The notes beneath the pieces were generated by a model. The model was not told the DNA's origin, made no database searches, and saw only the letters and a list, made by a program, of their open reading frames with translations. From Monocercomonoides exilis PA203 (taxonomy: Eukaryota > Protista > Preaxostyla): DNA of 64,000 bases. Below, piece after piece: positions 24,917 to 64,000 of the stretch. The position numbers and the translations under genes were made by a program. Location: assembly GCA_001643675.2 (NCBI GenBank), contig LSRY02000006.1, forward strand, positions 682,001 to 746,000, given 5' to 3'. Position 1 is the stretch's first letter. Each line of letters begins with the position of its first letter.

Positions 24917-25922
24917 TGGTCAACTTTTTATTGGGACTTTTTTCTTTATTGGAACTTTTTTTGTTTTTGCATGCCAATCATTCAAAAAAGCTAGATGGAC
25001 CTCAACACTCGGATGAGTGTGTTTATAAAACAAATATATTAAATTACCGGTTTGTTTTTGAAATTTTGTCTATTTTTCGTAGAGATACAATAATTTTTTA
25101 TTTATTTTGAAGTGACTTTTTTCAGCCGAGTAAGCATTTCACAAAAATTTGAAATCCATTTTTAAAAACGACTAGCATTATCCTTTTTATATTCAAAATC
25201 TTAAGTTTTACAACTTGTTTTTTCTTGATTTTTTCACATTTTATTTTTTTATCAACATGCGAACAAAAATTTGAAAAATTCTTTGTTATTAAAATGAAGT
25301 GTTAAAAATATAAATATGACATGAAAATTACACACTCTAATGAAGAAGTGTGATAAAAGCTAAACATTAAATTTTTCCACTTGTCTCAAACGCATCACAT
25401 AAGAATTAGTTTGATCGTTGACCTTTCAGTGTTGTGACCATTCACATGTTTGAGATAAAAAGAAAATTTTAATGTTCAACCTTTTTCACACTTCTTCATT
25501 AGAGTGTGTAATTTTCATGTCATATTTATATTTTTAACACTTCATTTTAATAACAAAGAATTTTTCAAATTTTTGTTCGCATGTTGATAAAAAAATAAAA
25601 TGTGAAAAAATCAAGAAAAAACAAGTTGTAAAACTTAAGATTTTGAATATAAAAAGGATAATGCTAGTCGTTTTTAAAAATGGATTTCAAATTTTTGTGA
25701 AATGCTTACTCGGCTGAAAAAAGTCACTTCAAAATAAATAAAAAATTATTGTATCTCTACGAAAAATAGACAAAATTTCAAAAACAAACCGGTAATTTAA
25801 TATATTTGTTTTATAAACACACTCATCCGAGTGTTGAGGTCCATCTAGCTTTTTTGAATGATTGGCATGCAAAAACAAAAAAAGTTCCAATAAAGAAAAA
25901 AGTCCCAATAAAAAGTTGACCA
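24917..25922. mobile_element. Non-autonomous foldback element FB2 (1006 bp), 437-bp inverted arms, TA-flanked
   Basis: TA|TGGTCAAC...GTTGACCA|TA; arms 24917-25353 and 25486-25922, continuing imperfectly into the spacer. The mirror ORFs 24907-25110(+) and 25729-25959(-) arise from this symmetry. Confidence 0.9.
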
Positions 25923-26391
25923 TATCTATTCTATGAATCTTCTTTAAAAGATTCTGCAATACTCATTTTTTCCCCAGCAAATTTTGACAAATAAGTGAAA
26001 GAAAAAGAAAACGGTATAATTTAATAAGTAATAATTCCAAGCGAAAAATTACTTTTTGAATAAGCTTTCCTTTTTAATTTGATCATTTAAGAAATAAAGA
26101 GACTTCCTGTCTCCGTTTCTCATCACATGTCGAATAATTGAAACGAACATTATAAAAATTAACAATATTAGATATGAGAAATACTATAAAATTCAAAGAT
26201 AAGAGTTCGGGTCTGTAAAAATAAGTTGTAAGCAAATCATCAAACTATGCATCCAGCTTTATCTAAAGAGTAATACTCTTTATATAAAGCAAACAATATT
26301 TTAAATTTGCTTTTCAATTGAAACCATTCTCAAGCAAATACACAAAACTTCTGTACAGATATTAAAACTGTTCAAAATAAAATGACAAAAA

Positions 26392-38507: not shown

Positions 38508-41500
38508 TAAATAAGGACAATAATAAAAATTGTTCTGGGTTATGGGTTCATATTTCTCAAAGCTAATAATTGTGACAATGCAATTTTTGAAAATCTAATC
38601 GTTGAGGAAAATGAACTGGACATTATGAAACAAAGAATAACAAAAAATAATTCATAGGTGCTTGCACAAGAAAAATTTTTTGTTCAATTAAAAAATGTTT
38701 GTATCTGTGTGAGTAAAAAATCGGTTTTATAACCCAAATGGGTGATTATTACTGAAATCGTAATATTTCGTTCGTAATTTTGGGTTCAAATTTTTATCTT
38801 GTATATCAATATAAAAAATTGAAAAGAAAAAAAGTTTATTGAAAACATTTTTATCTTTGATTCAGTTAAAACATTTGTTTTTTTAAACAATCGTCATGCT
38901 TCTTTTCTTTTGAAATAAAAATTTTTATCAAAAAACTTTCAATCTTTGAAAAATCGACACCCAGAAAAAAAATATGATTTCAAAAATAATCTCACAAATA
39001 AATAAAAAAAGAAAAGAAAAAGAAAAAGAAAAGAAATAAAAATTTTTAACCTTGTGAAATACAAACATTCACTTTTTTCATTCAAAAAAAATGTCACTAT
39101 TTTACAATATTTACAACTCTTTGTTAATGTTTTCGGAAAAAATACCACTTCACATTACAAATAATATTCTTTTTGTAGTAATTTTTTAAAATTAGATTAC
39201 ACCTTTACGTCACATGAACATTTCGCATCCACGTCAATCAGTTTCGTCCCACAGTTTTTCACAAAAAAGAAATATTATTATTTATTAAATCTATTGAATT
39301 GTTTTTATTTAAAAAATTATAATTATTTGATATTCATTCTTAAATGATATATATTTTTTGATCAAATATTTATGAATAAAAAAATAATCCACACTCATCC
39401 ATGTTGAAACCATTGAATATGTCTGGATTTTCCATAATAAAATATTTAAAGTTGTATATTTTTATTGATGAATATTTAGATGAACAAAAACGAGTATGTC
39501 CAAATAGAGTGTGATGTTTGTTTCTCATCTGCCACATCCTTGCCATTAATTGAAAATTTCTCTTCCACAACTTATGAAATTCTCTGTGTGATTGTTTTTC
39601 AATTTTAATAGGGTTTATTTATGTTATCAGAATATTGACTCATTATTGTTTGAATATTTTAAAATCAATCAAAGACAGCAATGGTATTGAAAGATTTTCA
39701 TGGAATATTAATTCGTTGTGGAAAGTTCATATTTTTTTAAACTTATTTCTAAAAAAAGCTAATTATTTTATCTGAAGCTCTTCTGACATAAAGACATTAA
39801 CAGGTTATTTCTTTTCTAATCACTTTAATTGAATAAGCTGAACGAAATTCATTCAATCTTTTTTTATGATCGTTTCATCAAGACAAGAAATTAATAGCTG
39901 TTTTCTCTTCGTTGAAAGTTAAGATCTTGTTTCCGCTGTTTTCATTTTGATTATTAATCTTTTTTTGTTTGCAAACAAACATTTCATTGCCATATCACAT
40001 ATTTTCCCAAGCGAACAAATAAATAAAAATCTTGTATTAAAAAGATAGATTCAAATGTGAATTTGAGAAAGCATTTCAACTTTTTTGCTTGTTAATCTTT
40101 GGACAAAGAACTGATGAACAAGTTTATTTTTCAAAGATAAATAAAAAAGAAATAATCTTTGCGAAATAACACTTAACATTATGAAAGAAACACAACCGAA
40201 TGAATATTAAAGGAAGAAATGTGAAACTTGCAGTTATAACTTTTAATGTCAAAAAATGTTTCCACAAAACAAAAAAACAAAATGCATCACTTCTTTGACA
40301 ACTTTCATTTTATAATTCAAGTGAGAATAAATATGAAACTTAGGTTTACTTCAATTAAAAGTGGTTATAATATTTATGAATTCATTTAATTCTAATTTCT
40401 TTATTAAATAATTGAATAACAATATAATAAAAATTATTTCTTTCTAATTCAAACAATATGAATAATAAGTTTTTTGCTTCACTTATTAATCTTTCTTTCG
40501 TCATTGTTTGTTATTGACAAATCTTCATTCCTAAATGAAATGTTACACTTTTTTCCACTCATCAGTTCACGCATCATTTCTTTCTGTGCTTTCACTTTTG
40601 CTTCCTCTTTTTTCTGCGACTTTGTAAGTTTTATATGTTATGTCACACATTTATAACTTTATGTTTCTTTTTAAAAATTATTATGAAAACTTTATTTCAA
40701 ACTTTCACAATTTGTGATTTAAACTTTGATTTCAATGTTTATTTTCTTCTAAACATGAAAAGTTGAATAATATGTTTTGTATACAAAGTCCAACATCACA
40801 CTATGATAGCCTTTTTCACAAAGTTTTCTCAATCAAATGTTTGAAAATATATATTATTTTAAACAGTTTGCTTATTCAACGGTCGTTTTGTTGACTGAAA
40901 TTACAAAAATTTAATACGTGAGATGAAAACTATCAAACATTAACAAACGAAACATTGTTTTACAAAAAACAAACAATCACAAACGCATAAGTGTGTTCAA
41001 AGAAATCAATGAAAGAGAATGTCTTCTATCTCCAACAATTCTTCTTGCCTTCGAAAACATACGTTCGCAAAAGGCTTCACTGCATGGGGATGCAATTAAA
41101 TTGAAGGCAAAATTAGAATAAACAGTTTCCATATCACCTTTCAGAGCCAGCTCTTCGTAATAGACATATGGATCGTCCTCAATAACAGCATCATCCTGAA
41201 CAAGCAGACTTCTTCGAAAAAGTGCTTTACATCCTGAAATAAGAATATCATCCATTCCTTGCAAAATTATATTTGTTACTTCGTTGAAGGCAACAATTAG
41301 TCGAGGATACCAATCATCAAAAACAGCTTTTTGAGTTTGCTCCAATGCTTCATTTTCAATTGTTGAATCACATTGTAATATTCTTTTCCTTGACGAAAAG
41401 TTTCCAAAGCAGAGGATATCATCTTCATATGCAAATGATCTTTCGCGCTCTCGTCTTATCATTTTATCTTCGTTACAGATTTCCTTTTCTGCATCATTTT

Positions 41501-43989
41501 CTTCTTTGTTTCCAGCTGGATTTTTTTCATCTTTCGCTCCAGTGGTATTTCTTGTATGGTATGTTGAGACGTTATCTTTATCTGAAAATGATTCCGAATT
41601 GTTTTCGAAATAATATTCATCATTTGATGAAAAACATTCGCCACTTTCGAATTCTTCCTCTTCCATATCATATTCTAATTCTTCATAATATCCATCACTT
41701 TCGCTTTCATCTTCTTTTGCAATTTCTATTTCGGTTTTTTCAATATGATCAATAATTTCACAAACAAATTTCATTATTTCTGAGCAATTTCCAATGTTTG
41801 CAAAGTCTGTTTTGCTTGGGCAAATCAATGTTTATGTAGAATACAATTGTTGTGTGCGGTAACTAAATCGATTCTGAAATCTTTCCATTGTTGTTTTGAC
41901 ATGCAGAATGTCGAAATGAGTGAAATTTGGAACAGTTGAGTTCGGCTGTGAAGATGAAGATATAAACGGAATTGTATTTGATAAAATATGAGTTGTACAA
42001 GAAATGAGCAGTGGAGACATTTGTTGTTGAATGTGAGAGGATAACTGAGAAGAGGAAGAATGTTTTTGAGTTGAAGATAATTGAAATGGGATCGTTGATG
42101 ACGAGGAAGTTGGCTGAGAATAACTTGAAGATGAAAATGATTTGACAAATGATTCAATCGCATTTGATGAAGATGGAATGTTCGATAAATAGTCCTTTAT
42201 TATGCTTTGGTGCTTCGAAATTTCAGAAAATACTATATCGCAATTTGTGAACAAACCTTTTCGATATTTTCCTGCTCCAATTGGTGAAAGGGCATAAGCA
42301 AAGGCAAAAAATCTGCCTCTTTCACCAGAAAATGTGTGGTTGAAAAGCAGAATGATAATGTCTGTTATTGCATTGTGCCAATCTTTCTGTTGTAATATAT
42401 TCAATGTTGAATTATAGAAGAATAAGCTCATTGCGTTCAATAAAATAGGAAACACAAAAGATATCTTTGTGGAGTCTTTTTCGAATTGGAGATGCAAATA
42501 GTTAATCGGAAATAGTAGAAGTTCTGTTATTCCAGCAGCTTTAATGTTTTCTTCATTCAGTAACTTGCTCAAACGAACCCTTTGGATGTTTGTCCTAATA
42601 TAATTGCATATTTGAAATAAACACAACCACCTTTGTTCGGATATAAGTCGGACATTTCCGAACCAATATTTTTCGATTGACTGTTATATGCGACGCGGTG
42701 CTAAAATTAACGAGCATTTCTCTCACATTGTTCAAGAATTTATTATCTTGAAATGCATGACTGACGATCAAATTCACCAGATGACTCAAACAAGGAACGA
42801 AAATATGATTAAACAACGACAGACTGTCAGCATGTTCCATTGGAACCTGGTTAAACGATTGGTATAATTTTGTGAGTGCTTGAACCTGCGATTTCAAGCC
42901 ATCAGAACAAAAACATCTGACATTCGAACCAATTTTTCCAAACTCAATCAACAAAGTCTGTCCAAGTTCGAAGTAATCTTTTTCAGTTGAACAGCCTTCA
43001 AACAAATTCAAGAACAAAGGAACAGAATTAAAAGATAATGGCACAACTCAAACAACAGTGTAATTTTTGTTTCCAATTTTTCCGCTATCCATCATAATTG
43101 CTATTGGTTAATTTCTTATTGTTGACAATAAATTAGTTACCTTTGAATCATTTGTTTGAAGAATGATTTTTGAAATAGATTTTCTCGTTAAATAGGGGAA
43201 TATGTCTTCTCTCTTTGAATGAGGATGTAACTGAGACTCTTTGATTAAAGTGGTTAATAAATCGTTCAGGAAACTGCAGGAAGATTTAAGAAAAGATATG
43301 TTACAAGTACCTACTAATGAAATGAATGTGTCCATTAATTTATAACTATTGTTGCGGTTTAGGTGTAACTGCGTCCCTTTTGCATTTCTTGTTTTTAAAC
43401 ATTAATGTTGTGATGACTGAAAAGCAAAAATTGTTTAATAACTTTTATATGGACCGATTTTTCGTAAAACTTTTTGCTTCTCGTGAAAAAACTTTTTTAA
43501 AAAAATCACCCATAAATATGAGTATTTTTTCAAAAAAATTTATTAAAATAAGATAATTTTGAAACAAAAAGTGAATGAAATGTTATTAATTATTATATTG
43601 TCCTTCATTAATAATAAAAATTTGAGAAATAAAACAGAAAAAAAATAAATTAAAAAATTAAAATATTTTGATCAATCCCACAATAAAATTTTTAATATCC
43701 AAAATATTAGAATTTGCTTTTTTTCGCCAAGAATTGAACCCCCGCTTGCGAAAATAAGACAAATCAAATGTTTAGAAATATTATAAAAGTGTGCACTGGA
43801 TGATTTTTAACATTTCATTCAATTCTTTATAATTTTTGATTATGTTTTTAAGTGAGATTGTTTACCTGCAGTACAAGGATATTATAATTTACCTATGGAA
43901 CCAATAAATAAAAAAGCACTATCAAAGTTTATGAAACATTTGTTTCTATAATTTATATTGTGTTATTAAATTTTTTGACAAAACACATA

Positions 43990-44984
43990 GGGTGATTTAT
44001 AAACCCGAACATTTTCATAAACCCGGTTATTTTTTTTGTTCGTTGAAACAGAATTAATACCATAAAAAATATAAAATGCAAACTTTTATATGTTTATTTT
44101 ACTATTTTATGAAAGTACTAAAATTTTTTTGTTTCAATTTTTGTTTTTGATGAAGATCAAAGGAATTTTTATTTTATTTTTGATCATTTGTTTTGTTCGT
44201 TTTGAATCAACTTTCATTTTTTGTTTGTTTTTAATTACAAGGTCATAAAACATACATAATGAAGTTTTATTATTCGAAATGTTTTATCTTTTTATCTATT
44301 TTGTCTATTGTTTTTCTCATTTCATCATTTTTGACAAAAAATATTATAATATGAAAATTATGAGCTGTGCGATATTTTTTACTTTTTTAAAAATGATGTG
44401 CATGAAAAGAAAAATATTTGCGCAAAGCATTTATTATGTTAGAATTTTGTGAATGTTGTTGCTCAAATACACATCAATTTTTGAAAATGATAAACATGCT
44501 AATTTCATATCAAACAAAACTTAAAATGACTAATTATTAAGAATACCAATGCATTATTATCTTATTTACATTACATCGTAATTAGTGATTCTTAAAATCA
44601 AATATAAGTTCAGAAAATTTCATATTTTCATATTTTTTGTCAAAAATGATGAAATGAGAAAAACAATAGACAAAATAGATAAAAAGATAAAACATTTCGA
44701 ATAATAAAACTTCATTATGTATGTTTTATGACCTTGTAATTAAAAACAAACAAAAAATGAAAGTTGATTCAAAACGAACAAAACAAATGATCAAAAATAA
44801 AATAAAAATTCCTTTGATCTTCATCAAAAACAAAAATTGAAACAAAAAAATTTTAGTACTTTCATAAAATAGTAAAATAAACATATAAAAGTTTGCATTT
44901 TATATTTTTTATGGTATTAATTCTGTTTCAACGAACAAAAAAAATAACCGGGTTTATGAAAATGTTCGGGTTTATGAATCACCC
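43990..44984. mobile_element. Non-autonomous foldback element FB4 (995 bp), 355-bp inverted arms, TA-flanked, nested in FB3
   Basis: TA|GGGTGATT...AATCACCC|TA; arms 43990-44344 and 44630-44984 with one visible mismatch near the terminus; subterminal ATAAACCCG doublet. Confidence 0.92.
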
Positions 44985-45104
44985 TATAATTTCATATATT
45001 CACTTATGAAATTGAATAGATGTTTATAATCAGCATTATTCAATGAAGCTGCATCAGTGTATTATTAGGAATAGCATATTTGCAACAAAAAGGATAGAGT
45101 TATT

Positions 45105-47101
45105 TTGATTAATATTTATTATTGTTCGTTCAATAACAAAACAGAAAGAGTGGGAAATGATATTTTCATTGATAGTTATAACATCACGTCTCAAATAAAT
45201 GAAAGCCAATTCCAGTTTGATCTTCGAGAGAATCATTATTCACGAATTAATGCGATTTATGGAAGAGATTTCTGTGATTATCAAAGTGATTCAAATTTGA
45301 TTGAGTTTGTGACTATCCATCAGAGTGACACAATTGTTGTGAGCAGTGTGAATGGATCGAATGACAGACAATGTGAACAATCACGCTTCCATGCTACTCG
45401 ATTGTACATGGACTGGTGCATCTGAAATCTGAATATGTGAGTCTATTGCATGTTGACACTGAGAGTGTGATTGGAAGAGAAATTAATCTGGAGGTGATGA
45501 GTTTGAGTTCGAAGAGCAGAGAAATTTGTAAAGTTGAAGTGAAATCAAGCATTGGAAAAACAAGAAGGGAATTGATAACAATAACAGGAACAGTTTCATT
45601 GATGAGAGTGAATTTTGTGTTTGATCCAAATTTCGTTTCTCAATATGAATCATTGATGTCTCCAGAGGGATAAATTCTTGAGATGATGAATTGTTCATTC
45701 ACATCAAAGCAATTGATGGAAGAAGGAAACGCAAGATTAGCAAACATTCCATTTCACATTATCAATATGGAAAAAGGAGAATTGCAACTTGATGGATGCA
45801 CAGCGTCAAATCTCATTCTTCATGAGTCTGCATTGTGTCTTTCATCACAACTTCCATCAGAAATTGATTCATTAACGATTTGTAATTCAACAATTTCACA
45901 CTCAATAATTGAAATCATTGAATGTGGACAGTTGAATATGGATAGATTATTTGTTGAAAATATCACAGTTGAAGGAAATGGAGAATCACTGATATCTTGT
46001 TTGTCAATGAAAAAGACGATGCAATTGGCAAATTGCACAATAGGTGGAGTCGGTTCAAAGACCACAAAAGGGAAATTGATGAAATTGGAGAATAGTTTAG
46101 ATGTTAAAATGGACAGCTGCGTGTTTGATGGGAATTCAAAGGAAAGAAATGAGCAATATTAGAATGAAGGGGAAGAGATGTGCAGATGGTCAGGATCTCT
46201 TGTGGATGTTGTGAAGAGCAATGAGGAGATGAAAGACACAACAATATCGAATTCACCAGAAGGTGGAATAACAATGAGTGGAGGAAATGTGATCATTGAG
46301 ATGGGGTTATTTGAGAATAATAATCCATCAATTGAAGGATATCCATCATTGAGAAGAAACATTATATGTTCGGATTCAGGAACATTGAATGTGATGAGTT
46401 TGAAAGGAGGAGATGGATTGAAAGATAATACATCGCTTTGGATGTCGAATGAAGGGTGCAGTTTTGAAGGGATTGCTTCAGAAAGGGATTCATCGTTTTT
46501 CATTCCAGTTCTGGAGAGTGTGGAAGCCAAAGAAGAGGCAAATAGAATGAAGCTGACATTCAAAGGGATGCTTCTTGTTCCATGCAACTTGTCTTTCTCA
46601 GTTGTGAAGAGGAAGGGAGAAGAGAAAGAGATTGAAAAACATGATTTTGATTCAAATGGATTCTTATCAGAAAGAGAAGCAGAAGGAAGTGTGACAAAAG
46701 ATCTCATCAGCAGTTGTGGAAATGATGTTGAGGTGAGCGTAAAAATTTTGTTTGGGAATGCAGAAGCTCCTTCATCAACAAATTCGTTCATTCTGAAGAA
46801 TGCAAGTATCGCTCCTCCAAAATGAGATGAAAAGATAGTTGAAAGTCTGAAAGAAGGAAAATCATCATGGGCATTGATTGTGATTGTGATATTTGCAATA
46901 ATGTTTCTGATTGTTTTTATTGCATCAATTATTCTAGCTGTTCGTTGGAAAAAAGCTAAGAATGAAACAAAAAAATATAAAGAGATTGTTGAAGATACTG
47001 TTAAGAAGGATCCGAAGGCATTTGAGATGGTGACGATGGAGATGTCACCAGAGGCGCAGTGGAGGAGAGCAGAAAAGAGCAGAAAGAAAGAAAGAAAATG
47101 A
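45105..47101 (+). pseudogene. Decayed internal fragment of the giant receptor-like family (last module, stalk, TM, juxtamembrane; no kinase-like tail)
   Basis: Broken ORFs contain GSNDRQC, CRWSGSLV, NNPSIEGYPSLRRNIICSDSG, SLKGGDG, PCNLSF, KSSWALIVIV and KKDPKAFEMVTMEMSPE; stops at 45671, 46160 and 46823 plus frameshifts; ends in an AG-rich repeat. Confidence 0.9.
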
Positions 47102-47178
47102 GAGAGAAAGAGAAAGAGAAAGAGAGAAAGAAAAAGAGAGAAAGAGAAAGAGAAAAAGAGTGAGAGAGAGAGATAGAG
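47085..47178 (+). repeat. AG-rich microsatellite (AGAAAG/AG)n at the truncation point of the receptor fragment
   Basis: Direct reading of the sequence. Confidence 0.85.
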
Positions 47179-49347
47179 TTTGAAATTTCTTGAAATGGAA
47201 ATATTGTTCATTCCGTTATTTGTTTGTCAATTTTTAATCAAGCAATTTTTTCGTCGTTTTTTGATCTCTCATATAAGTGAAGCATGCAATTGAAAGGCTG
47301 ATGAATTAAAAGAACGCTCTTTTTTCTCAACGAACTGATTAAAAATTTAAAAAGTGATTTGGAAAAATGAATATGAAATTACTATATTTTTTCGATGAAG
47401 TTTTTTTCAAGGAGAAACCATAAAAATTCATTCGTTTTTTTTCAAAAAGAAATCACAATATTAACATTAAAAGTTATTGATTCTTATCAAATTGAATCGA
47501 ATATTGATAAGCAGCATGCTGGAAAAAACAAAAAAAGAAAAAATAAATATATGAATATTATGAATGAACATTTTCGAAAAAAACAATATAATACTATTCT
47601 ATCAAAAACGAGGAATCCATGAATTATATTTTCAAAACTGAAATGTTTCTGAAATGAACAAAAATGATCTTTGATATGCAAAATGAAAATACGAGACAAA
47701 TTGAAACAAACTCAACTGTTAATTTTCATCTAATAATGTGATATTTCATTTTCATGAAGTTTGATTCAGATTTGCCATTATTTACACAATCTATCATTCC
47801 AGAAAGCAAAAACAAATTCCTTTTAAATAAGAAATTTAATTGTGGGATTGATCAAAATATTTTAATTTTTTAATTTATTTTTTTTCTGTTTTATTTCTCA
47901 AATTTTTATTATTAATGAAGGACAATATAATAATTAATAACATTTCATTCACTTTTTGTTTCAAAATTATCTTATTTTAATAAATTTTTTTGAAAAAATA
48001 CTCATATTTATGGGTGATTTTTTTAAAAAAGTTTTTTCACGAGAAGCAAAAAGTTTTACGAAAAATCGGTCCATATAAAAGTTATTAAACAATTTTTGCT
48101 TTTCAGTCATCACAACATTAATGTTTAAAAACAAGAAATGCAAAAGGGACGCAGTTACACCTATGCCAGTGTTGCAAAGTTGTTCGCTGTGTGTATTAAC
48201 TGTTGAGCTTTTATTATCCATGTCAATTTTTGCACTCAGGAAAAATCTCTGAATTGAGTTCTGCTTTAGCAACTTGCATTTGTGAAATTTGATTGATGAG
48301 TAGTCTCTTCTTCCTGTAATTCCACATATTGAATCAGATGTTGCATTTGGGCACAAATACAAACGATGGGACATTTTTTTATCTGATGAGCTGAGATAAA
48401 CAGGAGAAAATCCAATAAACAAATTACTATTCACCACTTCAAATGCAATTTTGCTGAGGGCAAAATTCTTATTTGTTGGATGTTTTGTAATCTTTGAAGT
48501 GATAAATTTGAACAAAAAAATCAAACATAATGTTAAGATCATAATAGCAAACATTGCCTTTTTGGAGTTGATTGCAACTTCTCCAAAGTGATGACATGCC
48601 CTTTCTCCATTTGCAAAAGTTTAACATGCTTTATATATGCTGTGCGCTTGAAAAAGAAATATTTAAATTTGTTAAAACAGTTGATAACAAGTTAATCAGA
48701 AAGAATATTAAACCACATTAGGATCTTTTAAGCTCAGTTTGAGTTCATCATTCAATTCGAATGTTGACAATAAGTCTTCTCGATCCATGTTTATATAATA
48801 ATCAACAAATCTACGTATGACGGGAACTTTTTTCCTTCCGTGTCAGATTTTTCAAAAATCCGCAATTCAAATCTGCCGCGGAACAACCCATTTTGATTTT
48901 TTTATAAAACATTTCCCTTTCGAAAAATTGTTGTTCATGTTTTATTCATTTTTTTGTTGTATTTATAAAATCCTGGTGTATTGAACTATGACGTAAAAAA
49001 CTTTTCTCCGTAAGTCACATTGGCTTTTTAAAAAAGTCAAAGGCAGATTGCCGCAATGATTTACATTAGATTAATAATTTTTGAAATCATAACTTGTTTA
49101 GGAACTTTGATATTTCAAGTGTTTCATTTCTTTCGAAAGTGATTTTTCATTTTCAAGAAAAATGTTTTATAAATATTTAAAAAGGCAATGTCTGAGATGA
49201 TATTCATTAAAAATATTATGTTTGAAAGGATTTTAAACTTTTTTGTGTTCATTTATCAAATTTCAAAGTGAACTCTCAAACCGAAAATTATGATAGAGAA
49301 AATTTGGATTCAAAAACAATCACACAAATTCAAAAGAAAATAACATA

Positions 49348-49616
49348 TGGGGGAAAATACGGATTTTCAAGCTTTTTTTGAACAAGGCATTGAAAAATTG
49401 TTTCACTCATAACTTAATTTCACTTTCTCAAATTTCAAAATAAATTAGATTTTCATATCCGTAAACAGGCATCGTAGAAATTAAAACATAAAGTTTTCCA
49501 ACATTTCACTCATGTCGAAAAATGGACCCATTTTTATTCGATTTTTGATCTCAAAAAGTCAATGAAAAGTACATTATTTTTCAATAAAAAAGCTTGAAGT
49601 TGCATATTTTTCCCCA
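49348..49616. mobile_element. Short MITE (269 bp), ~38-bp imperfect TIRs, TA-flanked
   Basis: TA|TGGGGGAAAATAC..TTCAAGCTTTTTT ... AAAAAAGCTTGAA..TATTTTTCCCCA|TA; diverged inverted copy at ~63720-63931. Confidence 0.75.
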
Positions 49617-49852
49617 TATAAAGTTGAGTCTGAAAATGAAGGAAATTCAGAAATCTGAATAAAAACAAAAAATCAAATATTTCACTCATTCATTATAAAA
49701 ATAATTAATTTAAAGTGAAGTGTATTTTCAAATTTTGCCTGATATCTTCTCACTTTTCTCTTTTCTTTTCTGCTCCACTTATTTTTTACATTTGTAATTA
49801 AAAACACACTTTCAAGTTTTATATTAATTTTTAATTTAATTTTCATTTTCAG

Positions 49853-50313: not shown

Positions 50314-51159
50314 ATGATATTTTATTTATTTGCTTCAGTTATTGCAGAATCAATTGTTGAAACAGTTAACAACGATCCAAGCTCCACATGGGTTGCAATT
50401 GAATATCCAAGAGAAGTTATCACTTTAGCAAAGATGAGAGCAATGCTTGGTGAAGAAGCTCTTCCTATCGAAGACGTTGAATACGTTGAACCAAACAATG
50501 TCCCAGAGAACTTCGATGCACGTGAACAATGGCCAGGAAAGATTTATCCAGTGCGCTCACAAGCTTCTTGCGGATCATGCTGGGCCCACACTGCATCAGA
50601 AGCCATTGGAAACAGATTCTCAATCAAAGGATGCGGAAAGGGAATGCTTTCAGTCCAAGATCTCGTTTCATGCGACAAAAGTGATTCTGGCTGCAAAAGT
50701 GGTTCTGGACCAATAGTTACAAAATGGCTTGCTTCAAATGGAGTCACAACTGAAGAATGCCTCCCATATGTTTCTGGAAATGGACGTGTTCCATCATGTC
50801 CAACAAAATGTGCTAATGGATCAAGAATTGTTCGTTACAAATATGAGAAAGCTGAGACTTACACAGTCAAGAATGTTCAAGAAGAATTGATGAAAAACGG
50901 TCCAGTTTACTTCCGTTTCACAGTTTATACAGATTTTATGAACTACAAGAGCGGAATTTATCAACACAAATCAGGATACCAAGAAGGAGGACATGCTGTA
51001 CTTTTGATCGGATGGGGCGTTGAAGATGGTGTTCCATACTGGCTTCTTCAGAACTCATGGGGAACAGGGTGGGGAGAGAAAGGTCACTTTAAGTTCATCA
51101 GAGGAAAAAATGATTGCGGATGTGAACAAGGATTCTACGCAGGACCTGTTAAATGCTAA
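50314..51159 (+). CDS. CTSB: Cathepsin B-like cysteine protease (papain family C1A), 281 aa
   Basis: Signal peptide and short propeptide, FDAREQWP, QASCGSCWA (catalytic Cys), LSVQDLVSC, GPV, YKSGIY, GGHAV (His), WLLQNSWG (Asn). Confidence 0.96.
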   Translation: MIFYLFASVIAESIVETVNNDPSSTWVAIEYPREVITLAKMRAMLGEEALPIEDVEYVEPNNVPENFDAREQWPGKIYPVRSQASCGSCWAHTASEAIGNRFSIKGCGKGMLSVQDLVSCDKSDSGCKSGSGPIVTKWLASNGVTTEECLPYVSGNGRVPSCPTKCANGSRIVRYKYEKAETYTVKNVQEELMKNGPVYFRFTVYTDFMNYKSGIYQHKSGYQEGGHAVLLIGWGVEDGVPYWLLQNSWGTGWGEKGHFKFIRGKNDCGCEQGFYAGPVKC

Positions 51160-55400: not shown

Positions 55401-55544
55401 TTGATATGACAAATGGAAATAAAATCATAGAATTGGAACCTGAAAATGGAAATGGTGAAGGAAATAATATTTTTTTTAATTCCGCAAGATTATGGGATAT
55501 TATCAGAAATTTGGGTTCAAAAACCCATAATCATCATTGAAACA

Positions 55545-58500
55545 ATGATTCCCTTCGTTTTTCTTTCATGTTTGTTCTCAATTATTTGTGGAAAAGATTG
55601 CCATGAAAGGTTAAGCTGTGAATGTTCTGCTTTATACGTTTCTGAGACGGAGAAGAATGGTATTTTTGTGAAGAAAAGTGTTGTTCGAATGTTCTGCGAA
55701 ATATACAACTCATCAGCTGAATTAAAGTGGATGTTGCTTGAAAACCCAGATAATTGTGTGATGTTCGAAATAAAAGCAGGATCATTGCTGCAGGTTGAGG
55801 GAAGTGTGTTTGTGAGAGACAATGAGTGGAATGGGAATTATGTGAGGAATGGAGGGACATGCAGGCTGATAAACACGAGTTTGGGTGTTGGAAATGGTCA
55901 GGAATGTGGAATGATGGAGAGTGTGGTGAAGATGGAAGGAGGTGATTTGTCTTCGTTGCTTGTGAGAAACAGTGAATTTGAGAATGCTGTGTTTTGTGGG
56001 AGTGGAGGAAGTTTTCTGAGGGATGGTTCAGGAAGTTTTGAAGGAATCCAAAACTGTGTGTTCGCGAATATCACAAAGAAATTTAACGAGACAGAGGAAA
56101 TACAAACTGGAAAAGAGAGGATGATGAGGATGAGTTCAATGGAAGATTGTGATGTTGAAAGATCGATGAATGTTCTTGAGAGAGGGATTGTGAGTGGAAC
56201 AGAAGGATCTGGCTCATTTTTGTGCAACAATTGCACATTTGTTCGGAATGAAAGAGTGGATAGGAAAGTGAGAAATACAGATAGAGTTGAAACCACCGAA
56301 TCTCTCAACTTCACGAATGCTGAATGGATTGAATGCTCTGCAGAATGCGGTGGAGCGCTGTATGTGCATGACAATTCAAATGCAACACTGAATGTTGAGA
56401 ATTCGTCATTTGAGAGATGCAATGCAACATCAACAAGGGGAGGAGGTATTTTTGTTGAGAACGTTGGAGTGTGTTCTGTGAATCACTCCCGATTTAAAGA
56501 ATGTTACTGTGTGTCTTCAGATAACCACGGAGGAGCTGGAGTGGAAATTTTAGGAATCATCGTTCAACCGTTTGTTTTTAATTGCATTTTTGAAGATTGC
56601 TGGTCTGGAAATGATGCTGGTGGTTTGGGGGTGTGGACTTCAAAAACAACAAAAACGAAAGATTGCATTCTTGATTGCTCTTTTAAGAATTGCAGTGGTC
56701 ATATGCAAGGAGATTCTGATGGAGGAGGTTTTATTAGCTGGTATCCAATCGATAAAGTTGTTGTGAGAAACTGCCTTTTTCAAGATTGTCATTCAGATGA
56801 TCGTGGAGGAGGGGTATCTCTCAATTTAACAGATTATCATGGAGAACTGTTATGGTTTTGCTTTTTTCACAATAACAGTGCTCCACATGGAAATGATATT
56901 TTTGTTTATGATTATTTTGCAGATTCTCAACTGGTTTGGTGTTATTCAACAAGGACAGAAGGAGTGAGATATTATGCGGGTGGAGATAAGAGCGAATGGT
57001 TGCCGAACAACGGTGGAAAATGCAGATTTGTTGCTTCAACTCAAATTCAGGCAAATGCGAAAGACACATTCAGCTGCGGATTGAACGAAAGTTATGCATG
57101 CTTATCAATCAGCCATTGTTTGTCCCAAATGATTTCTGGGTTTGTTGAAGAAATCAAGGTGCTTTCTGGAACAGTTGTGGAAGGAAAAGGAGTTGACGTT
57201 GGAGAGAAAACAATCAGTGTGAATGGAGCTTCACCATATGGATCTATCATTGAGACAAAATTTGAGGCAAATGGATTGAGTCTATTCTGTATTGGAACAG
57301 GAAAATTGAATGTGAGTGATCTATCTGTGATTCACAATACGTCATTTGAAAACAATAGACAAAGCAGACTATTTGAGGTTGAGGGAAGCGGGTTGATGGA
57401 TGTGAAGAGAATGAACATTTCAATGGATTCTTCTCATTCAGAGGAGAGGAGCATTCAGAATTCGCTTGTAAAAATCGATGATGGAGAGTTGAAGATGCAA
57501 GATGTGAAATGGGGCCAAACATTCATAACCACAAATGTGATATCTTTGTCTCTGGAGGCAACGGTTTCGTTGACTTTGGATAACTGCACATTTAGCAACA
57601 TTGTGAGAACAACAGCTGGATCATCGCTGATGTGTGTGGGTGAAGGGTCATATTCGATAACTCTTGAAGGATGCAGAATTGATGGGTGTGGGAATGAAGA
57701 CTGTGAGTTTGGAGGGGGAATGATGGTTGAAGCGGGAAGTGGGAGTTCATTGAAGATGAATGGAGGCATTGTGAAGAACTGTTATGCCTCAGCCACTCAA
57801 GGGAGGGGAGGAGGAATTGGGCTGAAAGTGAGAAACGCAAATGCAGATTTTCTGATTTCATCAGCATTTGAAGGAAACATGGCCAGATGGGGAAGTGATA
57901 TTTTTGTTGACTCGATCGATCTGGAATCAACAACAAGAAGTGAGAAGATCACTTCATTGACAGCTTCATTGGAAACAAAGAGCAAGATGCAGGGATATGA
58001 AAATGGGGATGAATCGTTCCCAATTCCATTATGTGTCTATTTGTGGAACAACTTTTCAGGATCTGCATTTGTTGGAGGAGGATCATTGAGTCATGATTTT
58101 TCGAAGTGTGGATTTGAAGAGTTTCCATGTTCCACAATCACGAAGGCAGCATCTGTCCACTTTGAAGGGAAGAAAAAAGATGTTGCTCTTCTTGAACCAT
58201 TTGCCTTTGAGGATGAATTGAGGTTGACTTCGAATGGATGGAGCATCAAAGGAAAAGTGGAAAAAATAAAGTGTGATGTTTCTGATCAGAAAGAGGGAAC
58301 ACAAAATGGATTGATAGAGAATACAATCGCTGCATCTGTGACAGGTATTGTGTTTTCAATGAAAAAGTCACTGATTTTTCATGAAAGTGTGTTTGAGTGC
58401 TGTTCAGGGAAACTTATTCTCATCAAATGTGGGATGGAAGGAGGCACTGAAGCAATTTCTACAGTGCTTGTGAAGGCTATTGGAGGGGCTGTAGAATTGA

Positions 58501-61500
58501 TTGAGTTTGGATCGGAGAGTGCTGCCAAATGGGGTTCATCGATATTTGTTGTTGAAGGTCATTCTGGAAGCATTCCTTCGATAAATATGACGAAGAGCGA
58601 TTTTGGAGAAATCACATTTAACGACGGGTGCGTTATTGAGTGTCATAATGGAAATATCGAGAAGATAACAGGATGCTCCTTTTCATCGATTTCTCGTTCG
58701 AAGGGAAGTGGAGGATGTATAAGTGTTTCAAACAATGAGGATGAAAATGGAGATTATAAAGTGGAAATATTTGACTGCACATTTGAAGGGTGTTCTGTTG
58801 AAGAAGAGGGAACTGAGATTGGAGGAGGTGCGTTCTTTTTTGAAGCATCAACAAATACGAACCTGTTGATGAAAGAATGCAAGTTTTATTGTTGCACAGC
58901 ACAATTTGAAGAGGGAAGTGTTGGATATGGAGGAGGAATTATGCTGAAGATACTGAAAGAAGAAGAAGCAGGGTTTGTGATATCCTCACCTGTTTTTTCA
59001 TCTGATAAGCCAAACAATGCAAAGTTTGGGAAGGACCTGTTCATTTCATCTCCATCGCTTGCCAAGAGCATCAAGAACGAAACTCTGCCATTTGTGAAAG
59101 ACAGATTGGAGATGCTAACCGAAGACTCAATGAGAGGGTATGATGGAGGAGACAGAGAGTGTGCAATTCCCCTGATCTATTTCTGGAAAGCGATTGAATC
59201 GAGTGTGCATGTTGCAAGAACAGGAAACAATGTGGTTGTGTGTGGATTGGAAGAGTATCCTTGTGATTCTGTTGATTATGGGACGAAAAGAGGCAGTAGT
59301 TTGGGGATTGAATCGATTGCAGTTCAGGGACTATGCGATGTGAGGAATGAAATGTGCATGAGTGGAATGAGACTAGAAGGAACAAATGGTGAAACAGATA
59401 AAATCAAATTTGTGAAAGAGATTGAAGGGAGTAGTGGTGCTGTTGTTGAGTGCAAAGGAATTGTTCAATTCAAAGAAGTGGGGATTCTGATCCCTAGTGC
59501 CTTCGATAACGAGGCAAACATCCTCATCCAGACAGGCACAGATGCAATCAAAACGACTATTGCAGGATGTTCAATTCACATAAGTGACAATGCTGAAGGT
59601 GAATTGACATTTGTATTGATAAGTGCCACAAAAGGAATTGTTTCTATTGAAAAGGCAAAGATGGCAGGGTTGGCATCAATGCATGAGATAATGAGCATAT
59701 CAGTTGGATGTGTGATAACCATGAGCGATGTTTCCTTTGAAGAAATTTCATTGAGCAGGAAAAGTGCAATTGTGATGAATGAAAATGAGATTCCAGAAAA
59801 TGGAAATGATAATGCAGAAGAAGAGTGGAATGTTCTGTTTGAGCAATGTTTATTTTTGAATGTGAAGTACAGTGTGTCAAACAACCCTTCGTTGCTTTGC
59901 TGTGATGTGCAGAATGAAGTGAGATTGAAAATGGAGAACTCCACAATTGACGAATGCGGATCGACAAGCTCGAATGAAGGAGGAGGAATGTTTTTCCTTC
60001 TCAACGAGAAAGGGAGTTTGGAGATGAATCACACAAAGATGACAGACTGTTTCTGCTCGAACAATGGGAGAGGAGGAGGGTTGTTTTTGAAATCAATGAG
60101 CGCCACACAGAAGGCATTGCCATTTGTGCTGTCAAACATCACATTCAAAGGGAATGTTGCACTGAAGGGGAGAGACATGTTTGTGAAGTGCACTGATCTT
60201 GACTCGCAAATAAGTGAATCACAGTTTCTGATAAATTTTGGAGAGCCGTTTGTGAAGGATCTGGCTATTTGGGGGTGCGCAGTAAATGATTATGGGGATG
60301 AAGAGGATCTGTTGGGGAGGGTGTATGTGTTCAGGAGCGAATTCATATTTGTGTCTTCGATTGTGGGGAACAGCAGCGACAGCAAGAACTGTGGGGAAAT
60401 GAAGGGTGCATGCTCATCGCTGAATATTGGTGTGAGTCACGTTATTCCTTCAGATTATTCACAGTTGTATATCTGGAATGAAACAACACTAACTGGTTCG
60501 TGCTCCGCTCAGAAGGTGACGATCAAGTCGATGGAATCGAATAGAAATTCAGAGATAAAAGTGCGTGAGATCAAGTTGGGCGATAAAGAAGCTGTGACAA
60601 CTTTGGGGTCTGTTCGATTTGAGAAAGTTTCATTTGTTTTTGGTGGAATTCAGAATGTTGTCTGCTCGTCCTTAATTCTCCAATTGAATGGATCTCTTAT
60701 TCTCGAATCTGTTTCATTCTTGTCAGAGAGCAGAACAACGGAGAATTCACACACCCTTTATAATTTTTCTCTTCTTGTTGTTGAAAATGGGATATTTGAG
60801 GCAGAAAAGTGTAATGTTGATCATTTAAGATTATTGAAGCCTGTGTTCATGATATTGAATTCAGAAAGAGCAACTTTCGAAGAGCTAACGATTTGCAATG
60901 TTCAATGCACAAGTTCAGTGATTGATTGTGGAAAGAGTGAGAAAATAAGAATTTCGAAGTTGGCAGCCGCAAACATCACTCTCCAAGGCGAGTGTTTGAT
61001 TTCGATTGGCCATGATCCTTCTTTTTCGCTTTCATTGTTGCATTCGTCGTTTGAACGCATCAGCCATTCAGCATCAGATGCATGCATTGTTCACTTGTCG
61101 AACATGAGATTTGCATTTGAAATGTTCAACTGCTCTATTTGTGATTGTACATCAGACTCTGAGAAAGGAAGTCAGGTGATGATTTCCTCATCAAATAACA
61201 TCCTGATGGAATTGTGCAAGTTTGAGGGAAACACAACATCTGAAGCAGAAGAAATGAATGGAAATACTGATAAGGTCTGCCAGTGGAATGGGTCAGTTGT
61301 TGATTTCACAAGAAGTGAAGTTTTCTTGAAAGAATCAATTATTGCAAATTCATCGGAAGGAGGATTGTCAGTGAGAGGAGGAAATGTGGTGATTGAGAAA
61401 GGAGAGTTTGTGAACAACAACCCATCGATTGGAAAATATCCCTCAGCTCGGAGAAACATATTGTGCTCGGATTCTGCTCAGCTGAATATCATGAGCTTGA

Positions 61501-63254
61501 AGGGAGGAGACGGAGTGAAAGATGATTCATCGATGTGGATTCTGAATGAAGGATGCACTTTGAAGGGGATTGTTGAGGAGCGAGCATCGCCATTATTCAT
61601 ACCCACGCTGCGGTGGGTGGAGACAGAGGAGAAGGAAGAGGTGCTGGATGTTGTGTTCAGGGGCACACTTCTTCTGCCATGCAACCTGTCGTTTCGCATT
61701 GTTTCGTCGGTGGGGGATGTGGAGCAGGTGGAGACACACGAGATAAGTGAGTCTGGGTTTGTGAGTGAAGAGGAAGTGCATGGCACAACTGGGCCGGAGA
61801 TGGTGAGGGGAGCAGAGGCGAGTGCGGAAGTGAGGGTGAGCATCTTGTTTGGAGATGGCCATTCTCCCTCGGCAACTGAGTCATTCATTCTGAAGAACAG
61901 GAGCGAGACTTATCCAAAGGGAGATGAAAGGATTGTTGAAGGTGGAAAAGAAGGGAAATCATCATGGGCATTGATTGTAATTGTGCTTGTTGTTGTTCTT
62001 TTGATTATTCTAATAATTGCGGTGATATTCATTGTTCGATGGAGAAAGCAAAAGAGAAGAACGGAAGAGTTGGAGATAATTGTGGAAGACACAGTGAAGA
62101 AGGATCCGAAGGCGTTTGAGATGGTGACGATGGAGATGTCACCAGAGGAACAGTGGAGGAGAGCTGAGAGGGAAGCTGAAAAGAAAAATGATGAGAGGAT
62201 GAAGAAGAGAATAAATGATACGAATATGCAGCACTCAGAGTCATCCGAGCATTTACTGAGTGAGAGTGGTTCCACAGAATATATCCTTGGAAGAGATTCA
62301 GACAAGATCCCTCAATGGATTCTGGAGAAAGATGATTATGAGGAAACAAGGAAGAGAACTCCTTCTCCATCCATCTCATCCACTTCAACTACTGATTCAG
62401 ATTCCACATTTGCTCGGAGAGAGGATCTGTGCCCAACCACCTCATCCATCTCGAACTTGGTGGATGCAATGGCCTGCTCATCTCCTCATGAGAAACTGAT
62501 TGTTGATCTGAGGGATTCACTGTTCATGCTGCTTCATGGAAGGAACGAGAAGAAGGAGATGGCGATTGGCACTCTGCAGGAGAGGGAGCTGACAGCTGCT
62601 CAGATCCTGTTCTGGGTGGCGAACGGTGCACTTCACTCATTTGATGAAATGGAAAATCCGCTCTCTTCTCTTGACAATCTGACTCCTCACATTGTGTTGT
62701 TCTCCGAGCACATGGTCATTTGCTTTGTCATGCGCTCCGACTTCTCTTCTGATGATTCGGACTCATCATCTATCTCTTCATCAACTGTTGTGACGTCCGC
62801 AAGTGATAATGATGATGATGATGACTCTCTTCCCTCGTCCGCGTTTGAGGATGAGGATGACTTCAAAAAAGAGTGCCTGAGGTGGAAGGCACCTGAGCTG
62901 CTGATGAACAAGAAGATGGGTGCAACCAAGGAGTCGGTGGCATTTTCGATCGGGATGATGCTGTGGGAGTGTCTGACGCTCCAGATTCCGTTTGGTGATT
63001 ATGAGGCAGAGGTGGCAGGGCAGAAGATCGTGAATGGGGAGAGACTGGAACTGAGGAGCATTGAAACTTCTCAGTTTGTGCGAGTTGTGAAGTGCTGCGT
63101 GGCATGGAAAGCAGAAGACAGGCCATCACTGACTGAGCTTCGGAAGGAGTTTATCTGTTTTTTTCCAGCAGGTGCAACAATGCTGACGATCACAGATGCA
63201 ATCAGAATTGAGGAAGCGAGCAGTGAGAGCGAAGGATACACAAAAAACAAATGA
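55545..63254 (+). CDS. Giant single-pass receptor-like protein (~2569 aa): signal peptide, 4 beta-helix modules, TM, pseudokinase tail
   Basis: Intronless ORF (track 55446-63254; ATG 55545 gives the signal-like MIPFVFLSCLFSIICG). Same architecture and highly similar C-terminus to 13928-23077. Confidence 0.92.
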   Translation: MIPFVFLSCLFSIICGKDCHERLSCECSALYVSETEKNGIFVKKSVVRMFCEIYNSSAELKWMLLENPDNCVMFEIKAGSLLQVEGSVFVRDNEWNGNYVRNGGTCRLINTSLGVGNGQECGMMESVVKMEGGDLSSLLVRNSEFENAVFCGSGGSFLRDGSGSFEGIQNCVFANITKKFNETEEIQTGKERMMRMSSMEDCDVERSMNVLERGIVSGTEGSGSFLCNNCTFVRNERVDRKVRNTDRVETTESLNFTNAEWIECSAECGGALYVHDNSNATLNVENSSFERCNATSTRGGGIFVENVGVCSVNHSRFKECYCVSSDNHGGAGVEILGIIVQPFVFNCIFEDCWSGNDAGGLGVWTSKTTKTKDCILDCSFKNCSGHMQGDSDGGGFISWYPIDKVVVRNCLFQDCHSDDRGGGVSLNLTDYHGELLWFCFFHNNSAPHGNDIFVYDYFADSQLVWCYSTRTEGVRYYAGGDKSEWLPNNGGKCRFVASTQIQANAKDTFSCGLNESYACLSISHCLSQMISGFVEEIKVLSGTVVEGKGVDVGEKTISVNGASPYGSIIETKFEANGLSLFCIGTGKLNVSDLSVIHNTSFENNRQSRLFEVEGSGLMDVKRMNISMDSSHSEERSIQNSLVKIDDGELKMQDVKWGQTFITTNVISLSLEATVSLTLDNCTFSNIVRTTAGSSLMCVGEGSYSITLEGCRIDGCGNEDCEFGGGMMVEAGSGSSLKMNGGIVKNCYASATQGRGGGIGLKVRNANADFLISSAFEGNMARWGSDIFVDSIDLESTTRSEKITSLTASLETKSKMQGYENGDESFPIPLCVYLWNNFSGSAFVGGGSLSHDFSKCGFEEFPCSTITKAASVHFEGKKKDVALLEPFAFEDELRLTSNGWSIKGKVEKIKCDVSDQKEGTQNGLIENTIAASVTGIVFSMKKSLIFHESVFECCSGKLILIKCGMEGGTEAISTVLVKAIGGAVELIEFGSESAAKWGSSIFVVEGHSGSIPSINMTKSDFGEITFNDGCVIECHNGNIEKITGCSFSSISRSKGSGGCISVSNNEDENGDYKVEIFDCTFEGCSVEEEGTEIGGGAFFFEASTNTNLLMKECKFYCCTAQFEEGSVGYGGGIMLKILKEEEAGFVISSPVFSSDKPNNAKFGKDLFISSPSLAKSIKNETLPFVKDRLEMLTEDSMRGYDGGDRECAIPLIYFWKAIESSVHVARTGNNVVVCGLEEYPCDSVDYGTKRGSSLGIESIAVQGLCDVRNEMCMSGMRLEGTNGETDKIKFVKEIEGSSGAVVECKGIVQFKEVGILIPSAFDNEANILIQTGTDAIKTTIAGCSIHISDNAEGELTFVLISATKGIVSIEKAKMAGLASMHEIMSISVGCVITMSDVSFEEISLSRKSAIVMNENEIPENGNDNAEEEWNVLFEQCLFLNVKYSVSNNPSLLCCDVQNEVRLKMENSTIDECGSTSSNEGGGMFFLLNEKGSLEMNHTKMTDCFCSNNGRGGGLFLKSMSATQKALPFVLSNITFKGNVALKGRDMFVKCTDLDSQISESQFLINFGEPFVKDLAIWGCAVNDYGDEEDLLGRVYVFRSEFIFVSSIVGNSSDSKNCGEMKGACSSLNIGVSHVIPSDYSQLYIWNETTLTGSCSAQKVTIKSMESNRNSEIKVREIKLGDKEAVTTLGSVRFEKVSFVFGGIQNVVCSSLILQLNGSLILESVSFLSESRTTENSHTLYNFSLLVVENGIFEAEKCNVDHLRLLKPVFMILNSERATFEELTICNVQCTSSVIDCGKSEKIRISKLAAANITLQGECLISIGHDPSFSLSLLHSSFERISHSASDACIVHLSNMRFAFEMFNCSICDCTSDSEKGSQVMISSSNNILMELCKFEGNTTSEAEEMNGNTDKVCQWNGSVVDFTRSEVFLKESIIANSSEGGLSVRGGNVVIEKGEFVNNNPSIGKYPSARRNILCSDSAQLNIMSLKGGDGVKDDSSMWILNEGCTLKGIVEERASPLFIPTLRWVETEEKEEVLDVVFRGTLLLPCNLSFRIVSSVGDVEQVETHEISESGFVSEEEVHGTTGPEMVRGAEASAEVRVSILFGDGHSPSATESFILKNRSETYPKGDERIVEGGKEGKSSWALIVIVLVVVLLIILIIAVIFIVRWRKQKRRTEELEIIVEDTVKKDPKAFEMVTMEMSPEEQWRRAEREAEKKNDERMKKRINDTNMQHSESSEHLLSESGSTEYILGRDSDKIPQWILEKDDYEETRKRTPSPSISSTSTTDSDSTFARREDLCPTTSSISNLVDAMACSSPHEKLIVDLRDSLFMLLHGRNEKKEMAIGTLQERELTAAQILFWVANGALHSFDEMENPLSSLDNLTPHIVLFSEHMVICFVMRSDFSSDDSDSSSISSSTVVTSASDNDDDDDSLPSSAFEDEDDFKKECLRWKAPELLMNKKMGATKESVAFSIGMMLWECLTLQIPFGDYEAEVAGQKIVNGERLELRSIETSQFVRVVKCCVAWKAEDRPSLTELRKEFICFFPAGATMLTITDAIRIEEASSESEGYTKNK

Positions 63255-63719: not shown

Positions 63720-63931
63720 ACTTTTCAGTTCAAAAAACACAATAAAAATGGGTCCATTTTTAGACAATTGTGAAATGTTGGAAAACTTTATATTTTTATT
63801 TCAACGATGCCTGTTTACGGATATGAAAATCAAATTTATTTTGAAATTTGAGTAAGCGAAATAAAGCTCTGAGTGAAACAATTTTTCAATGCCTTGTTCA
63901 AAAAATGCTTGAAAGACAGTAGTTTCCCCCA
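63720..63931 (-). mobile_element. Diverged, one-ended inverted copy of the 49348-49616 MITE
   Basis: Shared blocks (AATAAAAATGGGTCCATTTT, CGATGCCTGTTTACGGATATGAAAAT, GAGTGAAACAATTTTTCAATGCCTTGTTCAAAAAA); ends TTTCCCCCA|TA; other terminus not visible. Confidence 0.75.
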
Positions 63932-64000
63932 TATATATCTAACCCTGTGATTAAATGCGATCGGTAATGAATGAAAATTTCATTAAAATGTTCTTGCACA

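Follow-up and report, generated by a model that had tools for sequence, protein, structure and literature searches.

The question raised by this stretch of the Monocercomonoides exilis PA203 genome (the window: 64,000 nucleotides (nt), C58:682001-746000 of assembly G000) is what kind of mobile element interrupts a hAT-like transposase pseudogene, and how that element came to carry about 2 kb of a giant receptor gene. A first-pass annotation, made from the letters of the window, had placed the element at 43362-48161 and read it as a Pack-type element flanked by TA dinucleotides that mobilises receptor-gene pieces. The genome searched here was the whole assembly (82,301,135 bases, 101 contigs; contigs and loci are designated C and L, respectively). 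We consider it very probable that the segment 43356-48167 represents a Merlin-superfamily transposon that has become non-autonomous through internal deletion and whose receptor cargo was inherited.

A repeat search of the window detected the outer inverted arms at 43360-43720 and 47803-48163 (361 nt, 97% complementary). The annotated arms are thus real, but they are longer than the 323 bp given for them, and with corrected ends they measure 365 nt. When the left arm was used to search the assembly, 41 of 221 candidates were scored as matches, and most of these formed inverted pairs separated by 3-14 kb. In nearly all of the copies examined, the six bases immediately outside GGTGTAAC are GGCATA (a few copies have one base changed). 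Because these six bases are conserved, the flanking TA constitutes the last two bases of the terminus GGCATAGGTGTAAC and is not a target-site duplication (TSD), which in this family is 8 bp. Based on the family terminus, the 8-bp repeats and the empty sites described below, the limits of the element were corrected to 43356-48167 (4812 bp). Its right arm (47803-48167, minus strand) has an intact family terminus (the reverse complement of GGCATAGGTGTAAC) and is followed at 48168-48175 by a TSD copy, AGTGTTGC. Its left arm (43356-43720, plus strand) begins GGTTTA, with a terminus, GGTTTAGGTGTAAC, that shows two changes relative to the family GGCATAGGTGTAAC; the adjoining TSD copy at 43348-43355, ATTGTTGC, differs from the empty-site sequence by one G-to-T change. 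The two sides therefore match at seven of eight positions.

Paralogous copies of the interrupted gene allow these limits to be compared with unoccupied sites. By coordinates, the left and right flanks lie 8 bp apart in five such copies, which bears out the earlier proposal that both arms belong to one insertion. Three empty sites (on C81, C48 and C27) were aligned, and each is gapless against a model consisting of the left flank, one 8-mer and the right flank; the C48 site carries AGTGTTGC, identical to the right TSD copy. These sites also bear on the element as first described, a TA-targeting (Tc1/mariner- or Stowaway-like) Pack-type element at 43362-48161 that itself captured the receptor fragment. 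TA does adjoin GGTGTAAC on both sides, and a foldback nested within the element is truly TA-flanked. However, a TA target would predict 26 nt between the flank positions at the empty sites in place of the 8 found, and GGCATA is conserved outside GGTGTAAC in nearly all copies; in addition, the relatives encode an IS1595-type rather than a Tc1/mariner transposase, and the autonomous ones among them also carry the cargo. We regard this alternative as very improbable.

The 8-bp duplication recurs in the family. Perfect 8-bp direct repeats lie outside the termini of eight elements (L031, L032, L041, L042, elements on C61, C8 and C7, and a copy nested in L044), and the repeated 8-mers are CTCCTAAC, AGAAAAAG, AAAACGTA, ATTCATGG, AGAATTGG, ATAAATCC, ATGAAAAA and ACTTCAAT, the last of these being found on both sides of the nested L044 copy. 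A chimeric repeat join in the nanopore assembly could also bring unrelated sequences together at this locus: the region is repeat-rich, and the DNA runs that contain the stretch derive from one sample and one study, possibly the source of the assembly, and so are not independent support for it. Nevertheless, at both junctions the same 8-mer stands next to the family terminus and agrees with the one present singly at the empty paralogous sites, and a target-site duplication is not something that a misjoin would produce. An assembly artefact accordingly seems to us only marginally credible.

The interrupted gene lies on the minus strand. Its downstream (C-terminal) part, 40977-43347, had decayed before the insertion and contains a hAT dimerisation match within 40977-41828; its upstream part, 48176-48800, is contiguous with the other part in paralogues on C81, C48, C27 and C36, and these are the uninterrupted copies that the first-pass annotation had proposed to look for. 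As the corrected excision (4820 nt) differs by 18 nt from the 4802 nt originally removed, the minus-strand open reading frame (ORF) pieces still fuse in frame (...SEQLCNNSYKLMD...), as had been reported. The paralogous copies are also broken. Identification of the ORF as a hAT transposase is probable, though not proven, from its sequence: the PF05699 (Dimer_Tnp_hAT) match of the last ORF piece is weak (E-value: 5.6e-4; 20.1 bits, with a Pfam cutoff of 21.4), among the 30 named neighbour clusters of an Atlas feature search, 26 have the PF05699 domain (score 0.90), and PDB sequence searches with two hAT pieces returned nothing useful. A 'PCLSHLVNL' stretch in the ORF at 42595-43044 resembles the hAT CxxH block and may correspond to it. 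At C81:5709-8983, less than 9 kb from the contig start, the hAT-like pseudogene occurs twice in head-to-head orientation, with both copies empty at the Merlin insertion site.

The Merlin superfamily, a group of eukaryotic DNA transposons related to IS1595 and IS1016, is defined by an IS1595-type DDE transposase, TSDs of 8 bp (8 or 9 bp in a wider definition) and termini beginning with GG. The last two features are both present in this family, as expected of Merlin. Genome-wide, the family ends are termini of the GGCATAGG type; the terminus GGCATAGGTGTAACTG occurs at 35 perfect and 15 one-mismatch sites, and when up to two mismatches were allowed, 56 forward and 59 reverse matches were obtained, compared with 14 and 20 for a control. 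The first feature is provided by larger relatives. Three of these, L031 (C40), L032 (C13) and L033 (C25), are 8.2 kb in length and have a central ORF of 381-520 amino acids (aa). The ORF at L031:3933-5078 (plus strand) matches DDE_Tnp_IS1595 (PF12762; E-value: 2e-21) over positions 6-153 of the 153-position domain, and a 534-aa ORF of L034 matches the same domain (E-value: 6.9e-20). The closest outside relative of this transposase is an M. exilis protein annotated as "ISXO2-like transposase" (47% identity). Approximately 23 transposase loci with at least 66% aa identity are present in the genome, seven of them without stops.

No match to PF12760 (Zn_Tnp_IS1595) was found in the family transposase at an E-value of 0.01 or below. 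N-terminal to the DDE domain lies a zinc-ribbon-like CxxC...CxxC motif (approximately residues 44-72 of the L031 transposase), with a weak rubredoxin-type match (PF16919, E-value: 0.0026). In the Merlin survey (PMC8101967), all described Merlins are stated to lack the N-terminal Zn_Tnp_IS1595 domain. L031 and L032 are approximately 100% identical over 8.2 kb while occupying different sites with different TSDs, indicating that the family has transposed recently. Sister Merlin subfamilies, which end in GGCATAGGTGTAAATT or GGCATAGGTCTAAATG, have the first nine to thirteen terminal bases in common; their termini pair at 3-11 kb around transposases that are only 41-57% identical to that of the present family.

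The window copy itself contains no ORF between its outer arms that matches a transposase in ORF and domain searches, in agreement with the first-pass annotation. Its left non-coding terminal region (43356-43989, plus strand, approximately 630 bp) is found family-wide and is 77-87% identical to that of other copies. This is followed by the previously recognised nested foldback, a miniature inverted-repeat transposable element (MITE) of 995 bp at 43990-44984 with 373-nt arms (99% identity; inverted pair detected at 43987-44359 and 44615-44987) and a TA duplication at 43988-43989 and 44985-44986. The foldback is precisely missing at the duplicated TA in the sister copies L036, L039 and L040, and the family to which it belongs is represented genome-wide by at least 30 full-length elements of about 1 kb. 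A 2-bp TA duplication is thus found for the nested foldback and not for the outer element. A spacer (44987-45128, plus strand) common to L036, L039 and L044 comes next; it is transposon-internal and is not found in chromosomal receptor genes.

The receptor-gene fragment occupies 45129-47101 (plus strand), and its extent had been correctly described as about 2 kb from the last module to the juxtamembrane region. It encodes the last part of the ectodomain, a transmembrane (TM) helix (approximately 46868-46942) and some 50 juxtamembrane residues beyond it, and aligns to residues 272-921 of the closest chromosomal receptor ORF (on C42) with 77-78% aa identity. It is a pseudogene: its reading frame shifts once, near 45375, and is interrupted by stops at 45671, 46160 and 46823. 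Between it and the right arm lies a segment that we call the 'tail' (47111-47800, plus strand), which opens with a purine-rich low-complexity run (approximately 47071-47180) and occurs only in a non-autonomous subtype of seven copies. The window copy is a dead, decayed relic without likely function. Because its cargo is decayed, its terminus is mutated and a foldback has inserted into it, it is old and probably immobile.

Is the cargo peculiar to this copy? For the comparison, 16 transposon copies (including that of the window) and seven chromosomal genes (L045 plus six others) were used. In all 15 of the other transposon copies, autonomous ones included, a receptor/kinase-like gene is represented by 0.9-5.6 kb of sequence, which is read inward from one end or from both, so the cargo is not unique to the window. 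Terminus pairs outside the comparison, some of which could be cargo-free, are located on C1 (733533-737123 and 801515-805104), C27 (63114-65787 and 98518-101190), C25 (765401-768552 and 1178062-1181217), C57, C91 and C29. The cargo carriers that encode a transposase are L031-L035, L037-L039, L043, L046 and the outer element in L044. The two inverted arms of L031 (495-3232 and 5988-8713) measure 2.7 kb and both hold receptor sequence; each arm encodes a receptor end with an ectodomain piece, a TM helix and a kinase-like C-lobe (PF07714, E-value: 5e-6), and the arm proteins are 65-74% identical to the last 575 or so residues of the two giant receptor genes of the window (13886-23077, 3063 aa, and 55446-63254, 2602 aa). 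Similarly, receptor frames precede the transposase in L034 (C61, 13.2 kb; 586 and 1280 aa), L038 (1390 and 441 aa) and L046 (977 aa). The collinearity of L034 with chromosomal genes extends approximately 2 kb further upstream than the boundary of the window cargo.

As transposase-encoding relatives carry the cargo, the window copy would be a deletion derivative that inherited it. Acquisition of the cargo by a non-autonomous element whose autonomous relatives lacked it was considered and ruled out, because these relatives carry the same receptor sequence (up to 5.6 kb, and in many cases within both of their long inverted arms); the part of the first-pass annotation that made the non-autonomous element the capturing agent is consequently abandoned. 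Its description of a non-autonomous element with terminal inverted repeats (TIRs) that carries a receptor piece, in a build that has transposed, holds. When all candidates were scored, the 'tail' subtype was found to comprise exactly seven full copies genome-wide, and four of the five examined have 8-bp TSDs of their own (seven of eight positions matching in the window copy, eight of eight in L041, L042 and the nested L044 copy, and none at L040). The nested copy (3.9 kb, at 4076-7974 of L044, C25:1200657-1210656) lies inside the central region of a transposase-bearing family member. Over the cargo and the 0.7-kb tail, L040 (C52) and L041 (C49) align collinearly with the window copy (77-80% identity). 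The term Pack-type applies to the window copy in a loose sense, as it has TIRs, a TSD, a host gene fragment and no transposase, but the same cargo is also found in autonomous relatives.

As an alternative, the first-pass annotation had suggested a later arrival of the cargo, in the spacer of an element already inserted here; such an element would have been cargo-free. One observation points in this direction: the closest DNA relatives of the window cargo are chromosomal genes on C42 (84-88% identity) rather than the sister transposon copies (76-80%). On the other hand, the other tail-type copies examined repeat the order of terminal region, cargo from the same boundary, tail and short right arm, and three of them have perfect 8-bp TSDs of their own; the 5' boundary of the cargo (approximately 45129-45138) is common to transposon copies. 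Secondary entry of the cargo is therefore highly improbable, and inheritance with the rest of the element is preferred.

The chromosomal family to which the cargo belongs is large. A search with the window cargo DNA gave 1146 first-look candidates in the genome, the best of which were chromosomal genes. L045 (C42) has an open frame of more than 2300 aa around the match, and no terminus or transposase was found within 10 kb of it. Of six further chromosomal matches, five show a single open frame of approximately 1120 aa through 1.4 kb of upstream sequence and the sixth (C42b) two frames; none of the six has the terminal region or a nearby census terminus. The two chromosomal genes closest to the window cargo, C42:322574-324530 (plus strand) and C42:364336-366290 (minus strand), are identical over 2 kb, inverted and approximately 40 kb apart, and both have two overlapping open frames where the others have one. 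The kinase match is limited to the C-lobe. In the literature, the receptor family is referred to as protein tyrosine kinases, mostly TKL, and with 332 members it ranks first in size among the gene families of M. exilis (PMC6759080); 29 Mb of 'unclassified repeats' (35% of the genome) overlap protein tyrosine kinases, an overlap for which the genome paper gives no explanation (PMC8767320).

The affinity of the window cargo for the C42 genes suggests a refinement of inheritance, namely that the inherited cargo was partly overwritten by ectopic gene conversion with C42-type chromosomal genes, the two forming one recombining pool. Four lines of evidence are consistent with this. First, the cargo tree is star-like except for a grouping of the window cargo with the C42 genes (support 99/99), and placing all transposon cargos in a single clade costs 41 log-likelihood units (approximately unbiased test, p-AU 0.034). 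Second, the C42 affinity peaks in the last 300 or so columns, C42 being closest or near-closest over most of the cargo. Third, L033 (C25:1445011-1454185) and L031 (C40:438310-447516) are 98-100% identical on the termini, outer arms and transposase, whereas the TM-to-kinase segment of both arms (L031 1895-3294 and 5893-7282) is only 76-92% identical, which amounts to a swapped cargo segment. Fourth, synonymous divergence (dS) of the cargo (0.55-0.64) exceeds the Jukes-Cantor (JC) divergence of the non-coding terminal regions (0.15-0.34) in the same element pairs.

Other observations weigh against it. No donor with more than 86% identity was found in the assembly for the swapped kinase segment of either L033 or L031, and the cargo tree is otherwise without resolution. 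If dead copies decay faster, chromosomal genes under constraint could seem closer than they are, and constraint on the terminal regions may deflate their divergence. A p-value of 0.034 is weak, and the tested group was not fixed before related data had been seen; the single-capture clade for transposon cargos is thus weakly rejected, which we do not take as proof of multiple captures. Partial overwriting is, on balance, a possibility that we advance tentatively.

Inheritance of the cargo, with or without such exchange, leaves the question of whether the passenger is subject to constraint. Of nine transposon-borne cargos, four have fully open frames of approximately 450-650 codons, although they differ from one another at about 20% of DNA positions, and the pairwise ratio of nonsynonymous to synonymous divergence (dN/dS) has nearly the same value in comparisons between transposon copies (0.29) as in those between chromosomal genes (0.30). 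These values are suggestive, though not proof, of a passenger that is more than junk. The simplest reading of the cargo data would be ectopic gene conversion between transposon-borne and chromosomal members, with selection on the passenger as the alternative. It is conceivable, although we think it rather unlikely, that the passenger is not inert, being kept open by selection or refreshed by conversion with more than 1000 chromosomal homologues, and that this Merlin family acts as a vehicle by which pieces of the largest M. exilis gene family are copied, moved and reshuffled.

The following course of events would account for the window copy. Family transposase supplied in trans would have recognised its termini (GGCATAGGTGTAACTG...), and the copy integrated at AGTGTTGC inside the hAT-like pseudogene with duplication of 8 bp. 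The cargo is a standing component of the family and was not captured by the window copy; it would derive originally from the 3' part of a giant receptor gene of the chromosomal family. The subtype to which this copy belongs may have arisen by internal deletion, keeping the left terminal region, the ectodomain-to-juxtamembrane piece and 365 bp of the right end, losing the kinase part and the transposase and gaining the 0.7-kb tail. Following insertion, the left terminus and left TSD mutated, the frameshift and three stops accumulated and the 995-bp TA-targeting MITE inserted.

Several points weigh against this account. As the window copy encodes no transposase, its class is assigned from its termini, its TSD and its relatives, and here the left terminus has two changes and the TSD matches at only seven of eight positions. 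When flanks were compared, matching 8-mers were absent at L040 and at three long elements. The window junctions rest on assembly-internal evidence. Finally, the direction of transfer from host to transposon is drawn from family size and architecture and not from a rooted tree, the cargo tree being star-like.

Other repeats in the window were also noted. Two foldbacks of about 1 kb are situated between the two giant receptor genes, at 23446-24431 and 24912-25927, with 358-nt arms (100% identity) and 480-nt arms (98% identity), respectively. A 202-nt inverted pair (49345-49546 and 63733-63934) was considered as the ends of a giant element and rejected, as 49345-49619 is a complete small MITE with inverted ends of its own. 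The copies of this MITE, with ends TATGGGGGAAAA..., at 49345-49619 and 63733-63934 are inverted, lie 14 kb apart and bracket a cathepsin B-like gene (50314-51159) together with the 2602-aa receptor gene, probably without forming one large element.

Autonomous transposons with captured genes are exemplified by the Kaonashi MULEs, which carry a ULP1-like protease. As in the present family, the passenger travels with the transposase and shows coding constraint; the superfamily and the passenger differ. Both Merlin elements in M. exilis and gene capture by TIR transposons are already known. In Lopes et al. (2021; PMC8101967), Merlin in M. exilis is described as having more than 100 copies in at least seven families, all with 8-bp TSDs and with intact or broken ORFs. 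These families, F1-F7 of Monocercomonoides sp. PA203, are like the present one in organism, DDE_Tnp_IS1595 transposase, 8-bp TSDs and GG-initial termini. Their TIRs are given as 23-29 bp (some with unclear inner borders) and no passenger genes are reported, while the family described here has arms of 0.36-2.7 kb with receptor-gene sequence; the present family may be one of F1-F7.

Pack-MULEs and Pack-TIRs (Tan et al. 2021, PMC8277862) are alike in being transposase-less TIR elements that carry a host fragment, have TSDs and occur at several loci. In that study, hAT and TcMariner elements make up 87% of the cases, multicopy ones account for only 1.4%, and the word 'Merlin' does not occur in the main text. 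The present family is unlike Pack-TIRs in that the autonomous elements share the cargo, the cargo always derives from one gene family and its open frames reach 900-1390 aa. Turmoil-1 of C. elegans similarly has transduplicated protein-coding fragments within inverted terminal repeats (Sela et al. 2008, PMC2572040), but it belongs to another organism and carries short fragments of two unrelated genes (PMC2572040); in contrast, the present family carries kilobases of one giant receptor gene and shows signs of ongoing exchange with the chromosomal family. In the literature searched, we did not find a Merlin family that has kilobase arms of a host receptor gene and multicopy non-autonomous derivatives.

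A consequence for annotation of this genome is that receptor ORFs of 900-1390 aa may be taken for ordinary members of the receptor family although they lie on transposons. More broadly, a transposon that carries and apparently exchanges pieces of a kinase family is a testable mechanism for part of the 29-Mb repeat overlap, for expansion of the family and for its mosaic evolution. If this Merlin family does serve as such a vehicle, it could account for part of the 35% of the M. exilis genome that consists of repeats overlapping tyrosine kinases.

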